This document shows positions 2,303-9,329 of a DNA stretch of 64,000 bases, in pieces. Under the pieces are notes generated by a model. That model worked only from the letters and a program-made list of their open reading frames with translations. It was not told the DNA's origin and ran no database searches. Each line of letters begins with the position of its first letter. The first letter of the stretch is position 1. Position numbers and translations under genes: made by a program. Location of the stretch: sequence record NC_070650.1; one strand, 5' to 3'.

Positions 2303-2875
2303 TTATAATCGAATACTCGAGGACCATAACTCATCCTCTAATGTATTAGTTTTAAATGTTTTCAATTCCGTATATCGAGAACAGTTAATGACTGACATAG
2401 TTCCAATGATATCTGGGACTTGGTTAAAACAGCCATGCCATTTTTCGATATCGCTGTCTTTAGGATTCGAAAGGTCATCGATATGGGGTCCGTGCCAATG
2501 TAGCCCATTAGCCAGAGAACAATCATAACCCAATAACAATACTCTCTCAGCACCGAGATTGTGAGCCAAACAAATAGCGCGCATGCCTGAGTTGAATGGT
2601 CCTTTTGCGGGTATTGGCATGTACTGAATATCTGGGTAATCTTTTATTGTGGTTCTGATAGAAGTCCATTTCACCATCGTATTAGGTACCTCATCGTGAT
2701 ATTTGCGCCACCATGTTAAATCTCCGGCATAGATGTGGTCACAAGTAGGCACTTTACGCCAACTATTATTGACCGCGATAATCGGATAATTAGTTCGCAT
2801 GATGAGATGGCAGTCCTCATCAGTGAGTGATGGCCCTGAGGCTACACAAATGAACGTCTTTTTATCGAGTGGCAT
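2303..2875 (-). CDS. nucleotide-sugar transferase-like protein (Maf/MptE/sialyltransferase-like Rossmann fold)
   Basis: ICVASGPSL, IAVNN, NSG..AI.LA..LGA..VLLLGYD pattern. Confidence 0.6.
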   Translation of the reverse strand: MPLDKKTFICVASGPSLTDEDCHLIMRTNYPIIAVNNSWRKVPTCDHIYAGDLTWWRKYHDEVPNTMVKWTSIRTTIKDYPDIQYMPIPAKGPFNSGMRAICLAHNLGAERVLLLGYDCSLANGLHWHGPHIDDLSNPKDSDIEKWHGCFNQVPDIIGTMSVINCSRYTELKTFKTNTLEDELWSSSIRL

Positions 2876-2993: not shown

Positions 2994-3758
2994 ATGAGTA
3001 ATAACAACGTCATTCCTTTTACGGGTAAAAAATTAATGTCCAACTGTCCGGTTATGGTCATGGACTGTGAGACAACTGATCAGATGACTCGAGTATCTTT
3101 CAGTATGACCGCGATGCAATCTTCTTTACGACTACGACCGGCATCCTTGCAGACCGACGACTGGCTATCCACGATGTTCGGCTCAACCCCGACAGTCATG
3201 TCAGGCGTTCTCGATGTTCGTGTACGTAACCGATTTATTGATGCGTTTAAATGTGGCGGTTTGACGCTGTCTAGGTGGCTGAACGAGGTCCGATATCTCA
3301 GCCAGTTGCCGCTGTGTGATATCGTAGCGACCTACGACCACTACGAAGAATTCAATGGATGGGCCGATGTAGACCGACCAGCAATTCGATTTAATCTCGG
3401 TAAAGGGGTTTCCATCACTCAAGAGTCGTTCTTATTGGGTGAGGGGTCAGATTACCCGGAGACCGCCGTCGAGGACTATCGTAAGTCAAACGTAGGCTGT
3501 GTCGAGATTGATGAGATTTATGACCACTGCTCAGATGACGCCCTCAGGAAATTGACTGTCGAAGTTCAATTGGTGGAGCACTTAGCTGATTGTTTTTATC
3601 TGGATGCTTTAGCTTGGGGCGGTGGTTGGGAAGTAGAAATAACGGAGAAAGAAACTACATTCTGTTTCTTAGAGGCGGTAACCGCAAAACACATCAAACG
3701 TTGGGCGTTATCCATCAATAACGAGTATTATAGTGTTTTCTTAAATGGGGATATTTGA
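2994..3758 (+). CDS. hypothetical protein
   Basis: 254-aa ORF with GGAGAG SD. Confidence 0.75.
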   Translation: MSNNNVIPFTGKKLMSNCPVMVMDCETTDQMTRVSFSMTAMQSSLRLRPASLQTDDWLSTMFGSTPTVMSGVLDVRVRNRFIDAFKCGGLTLSRWLNEVRYLSQLPLCDIVATYDHYEEFNGWADVDRPAIRFNLGKGVSITQESFLLGEGSDYPETAVEDYRKSNVGCVEIDEIYDHCSDDALRKLTVEVQLVEHLADCFYLDALAWGGGWEVEITEKETTFCFLEAVTAKHIKRWALSINNEYYSVFLNGDI

Positions 3759-4266
3759 TATGAAAGTATCAAACTGGAATGCATCAAACTGGTCAGCGTA
3801 TATTCATAACGGCAGCGTTATCGTAGAATCGTCCATGGGTAGCGCCTCAGTATTTCCGGCAACCGATACCAAGTATACGTTGTCATTAGGGGATGGCGGA
3901 TATTATCTAACCACTAAACCAAGTTACACCACCTGTTTTTTATCTGAGCCGGGGGGCAGTCATAACCCATTCCAAAACACATTCGAATTGCAGGCCGCAT
4001 TAAATCAATATTTCATCAGTGATGACGTCGAGGTATTTACTACTCCCGTAGAGAAACCCAAGAAATACATGCGCCTCCCTAACAGCGGAACGTTGGTGTA
4101 TCTGGTGGACATTTTGTCTGCGTGTAGGTTGACTCACGGTGACCATAATGGGACCAGTTTATTTATTCAGTATCCCATTGGTGGTATTCACATTTCCTGC
4201 GGCACTATCGAAAACGCAATTGCCGATGAGCGAGCATTGACCGAATACTTACTTTCGCTGCGGTGA
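3745..4266 (+). CDS. hypothetical protein
   Basis: 173-aa ORF; C-terminal module resembles that of 5290..5745. Confidence 0.7.
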   Translation: MGIFDMKVSNWNASNWSAYIHNGSVIVESSMGSASVFPATDTKYTLSLGDGGYYLTTKPSYTTCFLSEPGGSHNPFQNTFELQAALNQYFISDDVEVFTTPVEKPKKYMRLPNSGTLVYLVDILSACRLTHGDHNGTSLFIQYPIGGIHISCGTIENAIADERALTEYLLSLR

Positions 4267-4718
4267 GGTCTGGCATGCCAATTACCATTAACGACGGGTC
4301 GGTATTTGATGTACCCGCACAGACGGTTATTAATACCGTCAACTGTGTTGGTGTCATGGGCAAAGGACTGGCCAAGGAATGTGCTATTCGTTTTCCAGAG
4401 ATGGAATCAATCTATAAAGATAAATGCCGGCGGCGTGTGTTATCCCCAGGTAAGTTATACCTGTATACTGCCGGTACGCCGTGGATACTGAACTTCCCAA
4501 CCAAAATACATTGGCGTAACCCTTCTCAGATAGAATGGATTGAATCTGGGTTAGCGACGTTACGTAGGGTTTACCCACAAATGGGACTAACCTCGCTGAA
4601 TGTTCCGCAGTTGGGTTGTGCTAACGGTGGGTTGGCATGGCCTGAGGTAAAAGACCTAATCTATCTATATCTAGATTTGCCTGATTTGCAAGTGAACATT
4701 TGTCTAAACAACCTTTAG
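4263..4718 (+). CDS. macrodomain ADP-ribose glycohydrolase (DarG/Poa1p-like)
   Basis: INTVNCVGVMGKGLA, ILNFPTK.HW, PQLGCANGGL.W motifs. Confidence 0.9.
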   Translation: MRSGMPITINDGSVFDVPAQTVINTVNCVGVMGKGLAKECAIRFPEMESIYKDKCRRRVLSPGKLYLYTAGTPWILNFPTKIHWRNPSQIEWIESGLATLRRVYPQMGLTSLNVPQLGCANGGLAWPEVKDLIYLYLDLPDLQVNICLNNL

Positions 4719-4726
4719 GGGCTGCA

Positions 4727-5287
4727 ATGAAAGAATATTTGGTTTATCGTGGGGAATATGGGGCGAGGGCGGTGTTGTCCACGCAGCTGGGTTCACTGAC
4801 ATTTGTCGATGAACGCACCGTAGCTGAGCATTATGCCAGGATGCCCAATCAATGGCACTACACAGGTCTCAAGGAACCTAAACTCATCGTGGCTAAAGTA
4901 GGTATCCATCGTCCATTTATTAACACCCCACGAGACCCATTCATTGAGTTCAAAGACATCCGTAACAGTTTAGGACCAACCCACGCAATTAGAATCGCCC
5001 GTAAGTTTGCTGATAGTATCGTGGAAACGGATGCTTGGGTCGCATTGGCCAAGAAACACCGGGTCAATACCTTGGATGAATATTTGGCTCTACCTGATGC
5101 AACTACCCAAAAACTGTGCATGCAGGCATATCGGTATTTTGATGACCCAGAGGAAGTAAAGGTGTTGGTAAAACACCATTTTGATGGTGCCATCTATCGC
5201 GGTTCCGGTGAAAGTATGAATTGCGTTGAATACCGGATATTTAATTGCGACAATATCATGGTGCTGGCGATAGCCCCAGTGAGGTGA
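4727..5287 (+). CDS. putative ADP-ribosyltransferase-fold protein (ART-PolyVal-like)
   Basis: LVYRG strand, SLTF....AEHYA, FDGAIY and C-terminal VEYRIF; ATG 4727 follows an AGGGG SD. Confidence 0.5.
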   Translation: MKEYLVYRGEYGARAVLSTQLGSLTFVDERTVAEHYARMPNQWHYTGLKEPKLIVAKVGIHRPFINTPRDPFIEFKDIRNSLGPTHAIRIARKFADSIVETDAWVALAKKHRVNTLDEYLALPDATTQKLCMQAYRYFDDPEEVKVLVKHHFDGAIYRGSGESMNCVEYRIFNCDNIMVLAIAPVR

Positions 5288-5289
5288 CT

Positions 5290-5745
5290 ATGTACGGTGT
5301 TATTGATGGTATCTTGGATGCCGGTAAAATCAAAGCTCGTCTTTACGATGAGCTTAATGGTCATGAATTTCATAGCGATGCCGTTATTGACAAAACAGCC
5401 TTTTCAGAAAAAGATTGGGGTGATATTACCCAAGCGCCAGATGCTGGATTTATTTTTCTGATAAATGATGATAAATGCATATTGAGGAGAGAGAACATGA
5501 ACGACGAAACTAAAGCCATCGAACCTAAATACATTACGCTCTCATCCGGAGCCACCGTATGTCTGGATAACATTTTGGTTGTTGGTGAAGTAAAGAAAAT
5601 AGAAGGACTCTGCACCGAGTCTTATATTTTCCACATTCACTATAGAGGGCAATCCTTGCCGGTAGTGATGCCATACGACGGTAATAATTACCTTGCCCGC
5701 AAAGACCATGCCGAACTGTGTCGCAAATTAACAGGGGTGAAATAA
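5290..5745 (+). CDS. hypothetical two-module protein
   Basis: GAGGTG SD; N-terminus resembles 6116..6523, C-terminus resembles 3745..4266. Confidence 0.7.
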   Translation: MYGVIDGILDAGKIKARLYDELNGHEFHSDAVIDKTAFSEKDWGDITQAPDAGFIFLINDDKCILRRENMNDETKAIEPKYITLSSGATVCLDNILVVGEVKKIEGLCTESYIFHIHYRGQSLPVVMPYDGNNYLARKDHAELCRKLTGVK

Positions 5746-6101
5746 TGACTGAATTAAAATTCATGGACCTGGCAATAAAGCCAATGGGATTTATTGATGA
5801 TGCTTTCCCTGGAGACAGCGTACTGTTCATTACATCCACTACACTCGAGGTATCTGGCGGGCATAAGCTATATTTTTGTCAATTACCGCCATGTGATTGG
5901 GGGTCTCGGATTGATGAGCTAAAAGCTTATTACCGTGAATTTACCTCTGCGGGAACTATGACGTTCGCTATTTTTGATGTATTGGCCATATCTGAGAATG
6001 TAGTCAGTCTCAAAGGGATATTTCCAACAAATACATCGATCAATTGCATTTATGACAAACAGGCAGCTTCATTGGAAATAATTCCAACGGTTATGCATTA
6101 G
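5745..6101 (+). CDS. hypothetical protein
   Basis: TAATG overlap with upstream stop; weak similarity to 6523..6858. Confidence 0.7.
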   Translation: MTELKFMDLAIKPMGFIDDAFPGDSVLFITSTTLEVSGGHKLYFCQLPPCDWGSRIDELKAYYREFTSAGTMTFAIFDVLAISENVVSLKGIFPTNTSINCIYDKQAASLEIIPTVMH

Positions 6102-6115
6102 TGAGGGCCCGATGA

Positions 6116-6523
6116 ATGAAACACTACGGGGTTGTCAACACCATAAATGGCGGCATAGTCACGTCCACCATCTATGACGGTTATAGTAACAAGCAGTACC
6201 GTTTTGAATGTCAGTTATCCCGATTCAAAGACCCCGCACAAGTAATGCCGGGTTATTTATTTGTGCGAATCCGAACCATTGAAACAGATTACTTTGAATG
6301 GTATTGGTCCTGGAGGGCAAGGGAGGTGAATGCCCCAATTAAAGCCGACGTCAGGGTATCCTCATTGGAAAACTACGTGATGACCAATGAAGTCATGGCC
6401 GATATCGATGTTTCACTAAAATCGGGTGAGGTGATGATTCCTGATGATTGTGACACCTTTGAAAAATTCGAGGCGTGGATTACCGGGTGGGTTGATGAAG
6501 AAAATAACGGGGGTGTAAAATAA
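6116..6523 (+). CDS. hypothetical protein
   Basis: 135-aa ORF with GAGGG SD. Confidence 0.7.
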   Translation: MKHYGVVNTINGGIVTSTIYDGYSNKQYRFECQLSRFKDPAQVMPGYLFVRIRTIETDYFEWYWSWRAREVNAPIKADVRVSSLENYVMTNEVMADIDVSLKSGEVMIPDDCDTFEKFEAWITGWVDEENNGGVK

Positions 6524-6858
6524 TGCGTGATGCTGCTGCGGCACCTGCGGGGAATTTCATACCTAACGCCAAAATAATATCCCAGTTACGTCAGGGTGTA
6601 GTATATTTGACTATAACGCCACTCTACACTAGCGAGGTGGTTTTCTATGAATGCGTTACCCAACCGACACTCGAAGAATTTATGAGTATTCTGAGAAAAG
6701 CATCCGTGTCTGGTTTTGTAACAAACGTGGCGTCTTGCGAATACATCGATGAAGATGTGGTTGTTTTAAAAAATGTCTTCATGGAAGGCAAAGAAAGTTA
6801 TAGGCGTTGGGTTAATTGCAAAAATGGATGTTGGGAATTATCTTACAATAATGCCTAA
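6523..6858 (+). CDS. hypothetical protein
   Basis: 111-aa ORF with TAATG coupling. Confidence 0.7.
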   Translation: MRDAAAAPAGNFIPNAKIISQLRQGVVYLTITPLYTSEVVFYECVTQPTLEEFMSILRKASVSGFVTNVASCEYIDEDVVVLKNVFMEGKESYRRWVNCKNGCWELSYNNA

Positions 6859-6976
6859 CGATGTAGAATAATTACTAGCCTTAATTATAATGCGATAAAA
6901 AGAAAAGTCGGCCCACGAGCCAGGCAGTTGTACGTCCCCAGGACGCTAAACACTCAATAATAAATAGTCTAAACCC

Positions 6977-8176
6977 ATGAGGATTACAAATATGTCATAC
7001 CAAAGTTATTTTCTATCAGAAGCAAAACTCGCAGGCATATCTAAAGAGGACCAAGAGTTGGTCTTGAAGATGCTAAAGCCTATTTCGGATGAAGGACATT
7101 CTGGCGGCAGCATGAGCGTTTTTATCCAGTGGTTGGAGGACTGGGCCAATAACCCACAAACCATCACCGATAAGCGCAGTATGCTCTACCCGGTACAAGA
7201 ATCCGTGAAGGGTTTATCCTACGACGATTTGAAGCGGATCGCCGGATACGTTTATAAGACCTGCGCTTTTGAGCCGTTTACCCCACTTACCGGTAAAGAC
7301 GATGAGTGGATTGAATGCCATGATGGCTGGTACCAAAACCGTCGATTTAGTAAAGTATTTAAAGAAGGGAAGGACGGAATTCCGTATTGTCTTGACCGCG
7401 TAATTTGGTGCTATCCCTACAATGATTTCTCTGGATGGGGTGCGGTTACCCGTGGCGGTGGATGGAGTAGCGAGGACATCACGTTTCCGTATGACCCGGC
7501 GGCCCCAGAGAACGCAACAGAATATCGGTATTTCTTAGCCGACGATTGGCGTGAAGAACTCCCCGCAGAAATACCACCAAAAATCTGGCTGCAATGGCAA
7601 CGTCGCCGATATCATGCAGGCACTGACCTCGCCACTGGGAAGCTAAGACTGGACGTCATTTGCTTAGGTGAAACACAGCTTAATGAAGTAATCGTCGCAT
7701 ACGCCGCGGTTAAAACACATATTGAGACAACGGAAGGTCTGACGTTGGAACGTGCGATTCGTAAGCTCGGATGGGTGTGGGACTGTGATGATGAAACTTG
7801 GTTGAATTGTGGGCATACCATCGTAAAAACTGCTGACCTGGCACAAAAAGTCAGTTACCTATTAACGACTGAGCCGAAAGATACTACCGGGTATGCGGTA
7901 CAACAAACCACCATGTTACAACCAGGGAAATTCTATCAGCGATGGAAGCATTATCGCGATGATTACTTTGGGTGGATGAGGACTTCAGATAAACCCGAAC
8001 CCATCTATGTAGACAATGATAGAATGGTAACTGGCGACCACGATGACTATCTATGGCAACAACGCCGTAAATATGGTTATGCGCATCCTAAACGTAAAGG
8101 GGCGGTGCATGCTTCAGAGAACATAGTGGCGTGTGATGGCGAACAGCCACCGTTGGATGGTGCTGAGCCGGCATAA
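6977..8176 (+). CDS. conserved phage hypothetical protein
   Basis: 399 aa; contains FTPLTGKDDEW...YQNRRFSKVFK, a motif of a common phage family of unknown function. Confidence 0.75.
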   Translation: MRITNMSYQSYFLSEAKLAGISKEDQELVLKMLKPISDEGHSGGSMSVFIQWLEDWANNPQTITDKRSMLYPVQESVKGLSYDDLKRIAGYVYKTCAFEPFTPLTGKDDEWIECHDGWYQNRRFSKVFKEGKDGIPYCLDRVIWCYPYNDFSGWGAVTRGGGWSSEDITFPYDPAAPENATEYRYFLADDWREELPAEIPPKIWLQWQRRRYHAGTDLATGKLRLDVICLGETQLNEVIVAYAAVKTHIETTEGLTLERAIRKLGWVWDCDDETWLNCGHTIVKTADLAQKVSYLLTTEPKDTTGYAVQQTTMLQPGKFYQRWKHYRDDYFGWMRTSDKPEPIYVDNDRMVTGDHDDYLWQQRRKYGYAHPKRKGAVHASENIVACDGEQPPLDGAEPA

Positions 8177-8190
8177 CAAATAACCCAATG

Positions 8191-8214
8191 GGGAGGGCAA
8201 ATGCCCTCCCTTTA
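8191..8214 (+). terminator. intrinsic terminator-like hairpin
   Basis: GGGAGGGC-AAAT-GCCCTCCC followed by TTT. Confidence 0.75.
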
Positions 8215-8233
8215 TATCCTGGAGATAACTATC

Positions 8234-8497
8234 ATGAATATTCGACAACGTCGTAAACGTATTGCCCGCTCACGTAAAGTCGGAGGGTTCGTACTGGACT
8301 TCGACGACGGCACCACATTACAGGTTCCCATCTTCGATTCGCGGATAGCCGAAGAAGGTTGTGATGTCGCCATCGCAAAAGCGGTTAAATCTGCGTTACT
8401 GCGGGATGCGCTACGTAAAGGCGCAACAGGCATTGTTGATGTCGAAGTGAACGTCCAAGGTAAGGACATCCAAATTGATTGGATAGGAGAAGTTTAA
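8234..8497 (+). CDS. hypothetical protein
   Basis: GGAG SD before ATG 8234; basic N-terminus. Confidence 0.7.
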   Translation: MNIRQRRKRIARSRKVGGFVLDFDDGTTLQVPIFDSRIAEEGCDVAIAKAVKSALLRDALRKGATGIVDVEVNVQGKDIQIDWIGEV

Positions 8498-8498
8498 T

Positions 8499-9278
8499 AT
8501 GCCCGATGTGATTGCCCACCCAAATAAAGGCACTGTTGAAATCTCAGCTGACGTCTATGAAGCTTTACGTGCGTACCATCAGGGTCGGGTCTTAGTACCT
8601 GAACGCCTGACCGACTATCGTAAACAAAATGGACTTAAAGTTGGGGAATTTAGTGAAGCGATTGGCTATAGTTGTGTATCTGCGATTGAGCGGCATGGCA
8701 CTCAACCTAGTGCGCCAGTCATGGACCGATTACAGGTCGCTTACCCTAAAGCGAAATTCGTGGTAGAGCTTCCAGAACTGACGCCGTCCAAAAATCAAAA
8801 ACCGTGCATTGATGTAAATAAAGTTGTACGACACATCAAACGCAAATATCCGGACAAAAGTAGAGTCGAATTGTGCGAGATTACTGGTTTGGCGATGTCT
8901 CAGTTATTTAAAGTATTGGCTGGTTCATATCGTGATTTCAAGCCTATCACGGCCGGGCGCATGTTCCGTAGTTTAGGTGTAGTCCCAGAACGTTATTTGC
9001 TTGGGGTAGTATTACCCGAGAAAATGTCGCAGGAATATGCCGACATTCTGGAAATGGCTGCCCAGAATAAAGTCACTATATTTAGCCAATTCATGTCTAC
9101 TGTTCCAGGGGTGATGGAAGACCTCACACGTGAACTTAACTTGTCAAACCAAATCATCAGAATGTATCAGTCGGGTAAATCATTTCCACTGTTAACCAAT
9201 TACTTGTTGATTTGTGAATATTACGGATTACCGTTTTATTATTTCGAACAAGACTGGTTGGCAAACGGCGAACACTAA
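8499..9278 (+). CDS. multi-HTH (XRE-like) DNA-binding protein
   Basis: LTDYRKQNGLKVGEFSEAIGYSCVSAIERHGTQP, plus two further HTH-like segments (ELCEITGLAMSQLFKV; LNLSNQIIRMYQSGKSFP). Confidence 0.6.
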   Translation: MPDVIAHPNKGTVEISADVYEALRAYHQGRVLVPERLTDYRKQNGLKVGEFSEAIGYSCVSAIERHGTQPSAPVMDRLQVAYPKAKFVVELPELTPSKNQKPCIDVNKVVRHIKRKYPDKSRVELCEITGLAMSQLFKVLAGSYRDFKPITAGRMFRSLGVVPERYLLGVVLPEKMSQEYADILEMAAQNKVTIFSQFMSTVPGVMEDLTRELNLSNQIIRMYQSGKSFPLLTNYLLICEYYGLPFYYFEQDWLANGEH

Positions 9279-9329
9279 CGGCATAGGAGGAGGCGTAAGC
9301 CTCCTCCAGTTATGTTGTCTTTTTATTTT
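9278..9329. repeat. 52-bp repeat copy 2 / bidirectional terminator
   Basis: Differs from copies 1 and 3 only at loop GTAA and TATGTTG. Confidence 0.95.

Follow-up and report, generated by a model that had tools for sequence, protein, structure and literature searches.

Neighboring Macrodomain and ADP-Ribosyltransferase-Fold Genes of Klebsiella Jumbo Phage vB_KvM-Eowyn, Probably Two Separate Genes Rather than a Writer/Eraser Pair

Solo DarG2-like macrodomains of about 150 to 160 amino acids (aa) are carried by about half of the chimalliviruses, in which this class of protein was named AdfM in a 2026 paper (PhiKZ gp104, PhiPA3 gp108, Goslar gp83, and Asesino gp217; PMC13309987). PhiKZ gp104 strips DarT2-installed ADP-ribose off DNA, rescues DarT2 toxicity fully, is found in the phage nucleus, and is required on DarTG2-bearing hosts; catalytic roles are assigned to one Asn and one Lys (N22 and K80 in Thermus aquaticus [Taq] DarG2, N23 and K78 in PhiKZ AdfM) (PMC13309987). 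ADP-ribosyltransferases (ARTs), for their part, are reported as the commonest enzymatic domains that modify macromolecules in the polyvalent proteins injected by phages (PMC9503650). The ART-PolyVal family (PF18760), which is related to Tox-ART-HYD2, has an H-Y-D configuration, in which strand 1 bears a His, strand 2 a Tyr, and strand 5 an Asp (PMC5512222). Here, we report an analysis of two adjacent genes, gp008 and gp009, which resemble AdfM and ART-PolyVal, respectively. Both come from Klebsiella jumbo phage vB_KvM-Eowyn (genus Eowynvirus; genome of 265 kb), the opening 64 kb of which, i.e., 64,000 nucleotides (nt) of record NC_070650.1, are called the window below. Bases 3700-6200 of the window match the same positions of the Eowyn genome at 100% identity.

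An earlier note, made from the letters of the window, had recognized a macrodomain gene followed by an ART-like gene and had proposed a reversible ADP-ribosylation module, that is, a writer and its eraser, directed against host DNA or proteins or against a host DarTG-type defense. The observation is confirmed, and its interpretation is partly supported. We think it rather probable that gp008 and gp009 are separate ADP-ribosylation genes, placed next to each other in a counterdefense and host-takeover block, in which gp008 would remove ADP-ribose from DNA and gp009 would modify a host macromolecule. Adjacency of the genes, by itself, overstated the writer/eraser relationship here. The same note had remarked that a phage nucleus shields the phage genome, which is reasonable, because the only other named Eowynvirus member encodes a nuclear shell protein and a PhuZ tubulin (PMC13757433) and because Eowyn was grouped with chimalliviruses in clustering (PMC12390700); this judgment draws on the published features of the genus and on that clustering.

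The locus reads as follows.

4275..4718, plus strand: gp008, 147 aa, solo DarG2-type macrodomain, AdfM homologue
4719..4726, plus strand: intergenic spacer of 8 nt, which holds the AGGGG ribosome-binding site of gp009 and at which identity to the sister phages collapses
4727..5287, plus strand: gp009, 186 aa, solo ART-fold protein of an ART-PolyVal subfamily

By sequence and open reading frame list, the two reading frames are real and adjacent, 8 nt apart. gp008 stops with TAG (4716-4718), and gp009 starts on the same strand with ATG (4727), just upstream of which lies AGGGG. The macrodomain frame had earlier been started at GTG 4263; this codon is a possible alternative, but ATG 4275 is the likelier start, because it is the annotated one and is preceded by a GAGG Shine-Dalgarno sequence.

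gp008 and the AdfM class

gp008 was matched by the Pfam Macro domain (1.5e-8), by the PADLOC DarG model (5.8e-50; model positions 2-141 of 329), and by the NCBIfam antitoxin_DarG model (8e-48; model positions 1-144 of 338). The last match, at 163 bits, falls short of the 250-bit equivalog cutoff, as gp008 consists of the N-terminal macrodomain half alone; a C-terminal DarT-binding domain was not found in gp008, the antitoxin_DarG match being confined to the N-terminal half. The closest solved structures were the DarG macrodomains of Mycobacterium tuberculosis (5m3i; 2.9e-32) and T. aquaticus (5m31/5m3e; 5.1e-29), and PhiKZ gp104 was 38% identical (E = 2e-29). In the earlier label "DarG/Poa1p-type," DarG is by far the better fit: Appr-1-p phosphatases among the solved structures reach 6e-4 at best. 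Both residues to which catalysis is assigned in the described proteins have counterparts in gp008.

4341..4343, plus strand: codon of Asn23, aligned with the catalytic Asn of Taq DarG2 (N22) and PhiKZ AdfM (N23)
4503..4505, plus strand: codon of Lys77, in an FPTK motif, aligned with the catalytic Lys of Taq DarG2 (K80) and PhiKZ AdfM (K78)

Homologues of gp008 were found in 397 phage records, and the gene is under strong purifying selection (ratio of nonsynonymous to synonymous substitution rates [dN/dS], 0.05 against metagenomic contig L008); its amino-acid sequence stays 97 to 99% identical, compared with 70 to 78% for flanking genes. From these sequence comparisons, we conclude that gp008 is a putative AdfM-type orphan antitoxin, which places it in a class that is already known biology. 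It shares with AdfM the solo DarG2-like domain, the approximate length, and a chimallivirus-type jumbo phage genome; it differs in host genus, genomic position, and neighbors, and, whereas activity and import have been shown for PhiKZ AdfM, gp008 is known from its sequence. With the DarG of DarTG2 (T. aquaticus, M. tuberculosis) it shares a DarG-type macrodomain, but it lacks the C-terminal half. As it is phage encoded and has no DarT partner, it would act as an orphan antitoxin mimic.

Countering host DarTG, one of the roles that had been proposed earlier, is the best-supported role of gp008, because the protein is homologous to the experimentally characterized AdfM. By analogy with that protein, gp008 would hydrolyze the ADP-ribose that host DarT2 puts on thymidines of the single-stranded phage DNA, and phage replication and packaging would thereby be rescued; it probably acts within the phage nucleus, as suggested by the AdfM proteins of PhiKZ, PhiPA3, and Asesino. 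Such a role would extend AdfM anti-DarTG2 counterdefense to Klebsiella jumbo phages and bears on the prediction of host range for therapy phages.

A different substrate was also considered, namely, that gp008 works mainly on soluble ADP-ribose derivatives (Thoeris-type signals, ADP-ribose-1''-phosphate, or O-acetyl-ADP-ribose) instead of ADP-ribosylated DNA. The names given to gp008 by PHROG and GenBank ("phosphatase" and "Appr-1-p processing") and a Tad3 domain protein encoded 2 kb downstream would fit this idea, which we nonetheless judge improbable. DarG macrodomains match gp008 far better than Poa1p/Appr-1-p enzymes do (1e-32 versus 6e-4), the NCBIfam model for ADP-ribose-binding proteins is far weaker than antitoxin_DarG (3e-5 versus 8e-48), and the reported substrates of DarG2-type macrodomains are DNA adducts, on which AdfM has been shown to act.

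Family, predicted fold, and active site of gp009

gp009 matches phrog_8642 (3.4e-36), to which no function is assigned. A word-indexed protein search with gp009 returned only 4 close relatives; an exhaustive HMMER search returned 359 representative homologues. About half of the homologues are solo proteins of 170 to 300 aa, and the others form part of proteins as long as 4,616 aa. Within the phage collection, 47 records have a homologue, almost all of them jumbo phages. Two of the large proteins illustrate the context: in Tunturiibacter phage Tunturi_5, the gp009-like stretch lies within a 1,262-aa protein adjoining the portal gene, and in Dolichospermum phage Dfl-JY45, within a 2,387-aa protein; each of these has several Pfam ART-PolyVal domains. 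Large proteins bearing gp009-like segments also carry the Pfam domains MuF_C, LPD22/23/38, and Zeta-toxin, a mix that is the signature of injected polyvalent proteins (Iyer et al. 2017, PMC5512222).

The link to ART-PolyVal was found from both directions. The Pfam ART-PolyVal model matched 31 of 73 aligned gp009 homologues; the gp009-homologous segments of Tunturi_5, P0010, P0021, P0024, P0030, and P0061 scored 34 to 49 bits (48.7 bits for Tunturi_5) against a gathering cutoff of 31.2 bits. Conversely, jackhmmer started from the canonical ART-PolyVal domain of Dfl-JY45 recovered every gp009-type domain. A search of PDB sequences with the gp009-family profile gave only spurious helical matches (e.g., DARPins and HA2). 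Against its orthologues, gp009 has a dN/dS of 0.08 to 0.12, i.e., it is under purifying selection, which indicates a functional protein.

The structure of gp009 was predicted with AlphaFold2 from an alignment of 70 homologues (three phage-collection rows left out), with a predicted local distance difference test score (pLDDT) of 96.2 and a predicted template modeling score (pTM) of 0.89. The best Foldseek match in the PDB was the cyanophage A4 pre-ejectosome protein (2.2e-5), which is described in the A4 paper solely as a packaged ejection protein. Ranks 2 to 50 were taken by tankyrase PARP catalytic domains, all alike and individually weak (E of about 0.1, probability up to 0.92, template modeling score 0.35 to 0.39); the low template modeling scores are due to a helical insert in gp009. 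Among predicted viral structures (BFVD), many matches were annotated ART-PolyVal, with E values down to 1e-5. The ART fold proposed in the earlier note is thus confirmed in the predicted structure, on the PARP/diphtheria-toxin (H-Y-[EDQ]) side and not as a DarT-like protein.

DarT membership of gp009 was considered and rejected, as PADLOC gave no match at E ≤ 1. gp009 has in common with DarT the ART superfamily and a gene position adjoining a DarG-type macrodomain, but similarity to it was not detected either by PADLOC at that threshold or among the top 50 PDB fold matches, which included no DarT structure. The neighbor of the macrodomain is assigned to the ART-PolyVal family instead. The fold matches listed from the PDB and BFVD included none to Alt, ModA, or ModB; these phage T4 enzymes belong to clade R-S-E-2, unlike gp009, which is homologous to the H-Y-D family ART-PolyVal.

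Active-site positions were compared column by column between 158 gp009-type and 71 canonical ART-PolyVal domains, taken from the jackhmmer alignment. The parts of gp009 that matter are as follows.

4739..4762, plus strand: strand 1 and loop (LVYRGEYG), with Arg8 aligned to the His of canonical domains (Y-H-G-T)
4793..4837, plus strand: strand 2 and helix, with Ser23 (subfamily specific), Phe26 and Tyr36 (also canonical), and Ala37
4949..5176, plus strand: helical insert, about aa 75-150, where canonical domains have mostly gaps; helices of the model at 75-149
5183..5185, plus strand: codon of Asp153 in a G-x-D-G motif where strand 5 begins, the family-wide Asp of the H-Y-D configuration
5228..5230, plus strand: codon of Glu168 in VEYRIF, the candidate catalytic Glu of the earlier note, conserved in the subfamily only

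Common to both types of domain are Tyr7, Gly9, Phe26, Ala33, Tyr36-Ala37, Pro63, Gly151-x-Asp153-Gly154, Phe172, and Gln176, the last of which is Asn in gp009 itself; Phe26 and Tyr36 are conserved at 99% in the subfamily. Specific to the gp009 type are Arg8, His11-Gly12, Ser23 (Gly in canonical domains), Pro40-Asn41, the helical insert, and Glu168. gp009 therefore resembles ART-PolyVal in fold, in shared motifs, and in homology by iterative search, and departs from it as a solo protein of 186 aa with an insert of about 50 aa that is absent from canonical domains, with Arg for the strand 1 His, and, as a subfamily, with the additional conserved residues Ser23, His/Tyr11, and Glu168.

All of the motifs quoted earlier are present in gp009 (LVYRG, aa 5-9; SLTF, 23-26; AEHYA, 33-37; FDGAIY, 152-157; VEYRIF, 167-172); the predicted catalytic acid lies in another of them than the earlier note had proposed. 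Asp153, in FDGAIY, is conserved in 99% of the subfamily and 94% of the canonical domains. The position of Glu168, which in the model lies on the strand following that of Asp153, is Glu in 97% of the subfamily and variable (Val/Ser) in canonical domains. Because Asp153, unlike Glu168, is conserved across both, the alignment identifies it as the predicted catalytic acid of the family; Glu168 was rejected as the family's catalytic residue, being conserved solely in the subfamily, and appears as a subfamily addition.

gp009 would be a solo copy of an ART domain that is elsewhere borne by giant, head-packaged, injected polyvalent proteins. Most likely, it binds NAD+ and, early in infection, mono-ADP-ribosylates some macromolecule of the host, with catalysis through Asp153 and with Arg8 in place of the usual His; the affinities of the clade suggest that the target is a protein. 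With 186 aa, a single domain, and a confidently predicted fold, gp009 offers an easier biochemical entry to ART-PolyVal than polyvalent proteins of 1,000 to 4,600 aa do, and its Arg-for-His subfamily may reveal how ART active sites change type.

Some further observations concern gp009 and its relatives. An island of 92 to 97% nucleotide identity among the Eowyn-like phages lies at 4981-5100 (about aa 85 to 125 of gp009), within the subfamily-specific helical insert, while the most diverged part of gp009 is its N-terminal catalytic half; the island may reflect an interaction surface under constraint or, alternatively, another patch of recombination. Domains of the gp009 type (Arg8, insert) and of the canonical type (His) stand in tandem within single polyvalent proteins in P0026, P0009, P0090, and Dfl-JY45, and the giant protein of Dfl-JY45 (L007, 2404-9564) holds five ART-PolyVal-type domains in its 2,387 aa. 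Frequent tandem copies of the two types in one polyvalent protein suggest different targets. Tunturi_5 gp225 (L004, 1402-5190), the 1,262-aa protein named above, annotated as a MutT/NUDIX hydrolase, had no Nudix match at E ≤ 0.01; it contains a nucleoside 2-deoxyribosyltransferase-like domain and two ART-PolyVal domains and is probably a head-packaged polyvalent effector.

Distribution and histories of the two genes

The earlier note had expected the two genes to co-occur across genomes if they formed a pair. For the most part, they do not. Among the matches listed, adjacency of gp008 and gp009 is confined to Eowyn, KpGz_1, KpHz_2, and a pair of metagenomic contigs, which form an Eowyn-like group at the genus level; the two contigs carry one and the same gp009 orthologue, with 78% identity to gp009. 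A macrodomain adjoining the gp009 homologue was not found in PhiEaH1, Moabite, or SPN3US, and no macrodomain gene neighbors the solo homologues that come next in similarity (43% and 39%; metagenomic contigs). SPN3US-like Salmonella phages have both genes 9 to 10 kb apart, and the Moabite-like phage Haymo has them 95 kb apart. Seen from the side of the macrodomain, the gene directly downstream in PhiKZ, gp105, has no relation to gp009. Fusions are missing as well: a phmmer search with gp008 against 153 representative gp009 homologues, giant proteins included, detected no DarG-like macrodomain, and a Pfam scan found no Macro domain in 14 multidomain homologues. In the phage collection, macrodomain records number 397 versus 47 for the ART. 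Macrodomains have been reported in 56% and ARTs in more than 40% of jumbo phages (PMC9503650); the presence of both in one genome is therefore common.

Sliding nucleotide identity between Eowyn and KpGz_1 drops from about 1.00 to 0.65 to 0.82 at 4719-4740, exactly at the gp008/gp009 junction.

At the protein level, Eowyn and KpGz_1 are 97 to 100% identical over gp005 to gp008, 84% over gp009, and 68 to 74% over gp010 to gp014. Against metagenomic contig L008, gp008 is 97% identical, and both of its flanks are 70 to 78% identical. Between Eowyn and KpGz_1, synonymous divergence (dS) amounts to 0.01 in gp008 and to 1.2 in gp009, a difference of about 100-fold. By these alignments, the junction is a sharp recombination or mosaic boundary. 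Because dS differs and the break falls at the junction, gp008 and gp009 do not coevolve as toxin-antitoxin pairs do; partners of that kind are expected to travel and evolve together, and separate histories count against pairing.

In a true writer/eraser pair, gp009 would modify nucleic acid or some other substrate open to cleaning by gp008; the macrodomain would then protect the phage DNA or time the modification, and in Eowyn-like phages the two genes would work as a single module. The order and the same-strand spacing of 8 bp are kept in all five Eowyn-like sequences named above, both genes also share a genome in SPN3US-like phages, and the subfamily site (Arg8, Ser23, and Glu168) has diverged from canonical ART-PolyVal, which leaves room for a substrate other than the predicted protein targets. 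We nevertheless hold such a pair to be unlikely. The genes adjoin each other in a single genus-level group and are elsewhere 9 to 95 kb apart or alone; the record counts are unequal; no fusion was seen in either set of homologues; dS differs across a break at the junction; the characterized AdfM acts alone, against a host toxin, next to a gene unrelated to gp009; and gp009 shows no similarity to DarT at the PADLOC threshold given above. On the sequence evidence, the writer/eraser pairing and the reversible module built on it are not supported.

A bolder version starts from the active site. ARTs of the R-S-E clade (Alt/Mod/C3-like) have Arg on strand 1, Ser-x-Ser/Thr on strand 2, and a catalytic Glu on strand 5. 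gp009 has Arg8, Ser23-x-Thr25, and Glu168, all of them subfamily specific, but its homology is to the H-Y-D family, and its Glu168 lies on the strand following that of Asp153. The subfamily might thus be an ART-PolyVal lineage with a convergently rebuilt R-S-E-like site (Arg8, Ser23, and Glu168) on an H-Y-D scaffold and a changed substrate, e.g., nucleic acid, next to which the Eowyn-like phages recruited an AdfM-type macrodomain to keep their own DNA clean. We rate this as a long shot; if true, it would amount to a phage-borne, offensive DarTG-like writer/eraser pair assembled from non-DarT parts.

In the reading that we prefer, two separate genes would be cotranscribed but neither inherited nor selected as a unit. 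Several points weigh against it. A functional link at the local level would fit the 8-bp spacing and the gene order, which is conserved throughout the Eowyn-like genomes. AdfM is imported into the nucleus in a cognate-specific manner (PMC13309987), and import cannot be read from sequence. Direct scans with gp009 gave no match in Pfam (E ≤ 1), NCBIfam, or PADLOC (E ≤ 1), and the missing Pfam match counts here. The strand 1 His of canonical domains is not present in gp009: its column is Arg in 96% of the subfamily, including gp009 (Arg8), and His in 83% of the canonical domains. Position 11, which is His in 80% of the subfamily and in the sister phages, is Tyr in Eowyn gp009. Loss of the His together with Tyr11 could impair NAD+ binding. 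Finally, no biochemical study of any ART-PolyVal domain was found in the literature searched, and for this reason, we infer the activity of gp009 and its target.

The same residues raise the question of whether gp009 is a catalytically inactive ART fold that serves as a binder of NAD+ or ADP-ribose, as a decoy, or as a structural or packaged protein. PARP-family members without the His are often inactive. Besides the replacement of the strand 1 His by Arg, the Tyr at position 11, and the missing direct Pfam match, the nearest solved structural neighbor is a protein described merely as a structural ejection protein. Inactivity is, in our estimate, an outside chance of about the same order as a true pair. 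Asp153 is 99% conserved, and G-x-D-G, Tyr36, Phe26, and Arg8-Gly9 are retained; active ARTs of the R-S-E clade normally have Arg on strand 1; Tyr occurs at position 11 in 24 family members in which every other signature residue is intact; and dN/dS is about 0.1.

A superficially similar arrangement in Streptomyces phage Kradal was examined and set aside: the "ADP-ribosyltransferase" beside its macrodomain, gene 266 (L014, 2501-2956), is the DarG-like macrodomain match itself, and the GenBank product name of this gene appears to be wrong.

Surrounding gene block

gp008 and gp009 belong to a block of small, tightly spaced accessory genes (2994-9278), all on the plus strand. Another of its members and a neighboring gene on the opposite strand are listed here.

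6992-8176, plus strand: gp014, 394 aa, of which the N-terminal 142 residues match Pfam Tad3, a type I Thoeris inhibitor, and the other 250 or so are unassigned
2303-2875, minus strand: gp005, annotated as an alpha-2,3-sialyltransferase, with matches to phrog_4603 (3.7e-52) and, below threshold, to an MptE-like Pfam family

gp014 lies about 2 kb downstream of gp008/gp009, is about 71% identical in the sister phages, and scores 100.8 bits against the 27-bit cutoff of Tad3 (5.3e-29); judged by this match, it is likely a second counterdefense gene related to NAD+ and ADP-ribose. Methyltransferase genes flank the block, with gp003 (Methyltransf_23) on one side and gp017 (Dam) on the other. For gp011 (5745-6101) and gp013 (6523-6858), tblastn found no match in the compared stretches of KpGz_1 (L013) and L008; gene content of the block therefore varies within the genus. 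The block looks like a variable counterdefense island, and in such an island, two NAD+/ADP-ribose genes may stand next to each other without any direct functional coupling having to be assumed.

gp005 is 98% conserved in the sister phages and forms a minus-strand trio with gp003 and gp004. A scan for sigma-70 promoters and terminators was uninformative, with fewer promoter-like sites than in shuffled sequences, as expected for a phage that has its own RNA polymerases. Just after gp016, a strong GC-rich hairpin (9286-9307, plus strand; 9 pairs, 7 of them G-C), whose tail is not T-rich, possibly marks the end of the plus-strand block.

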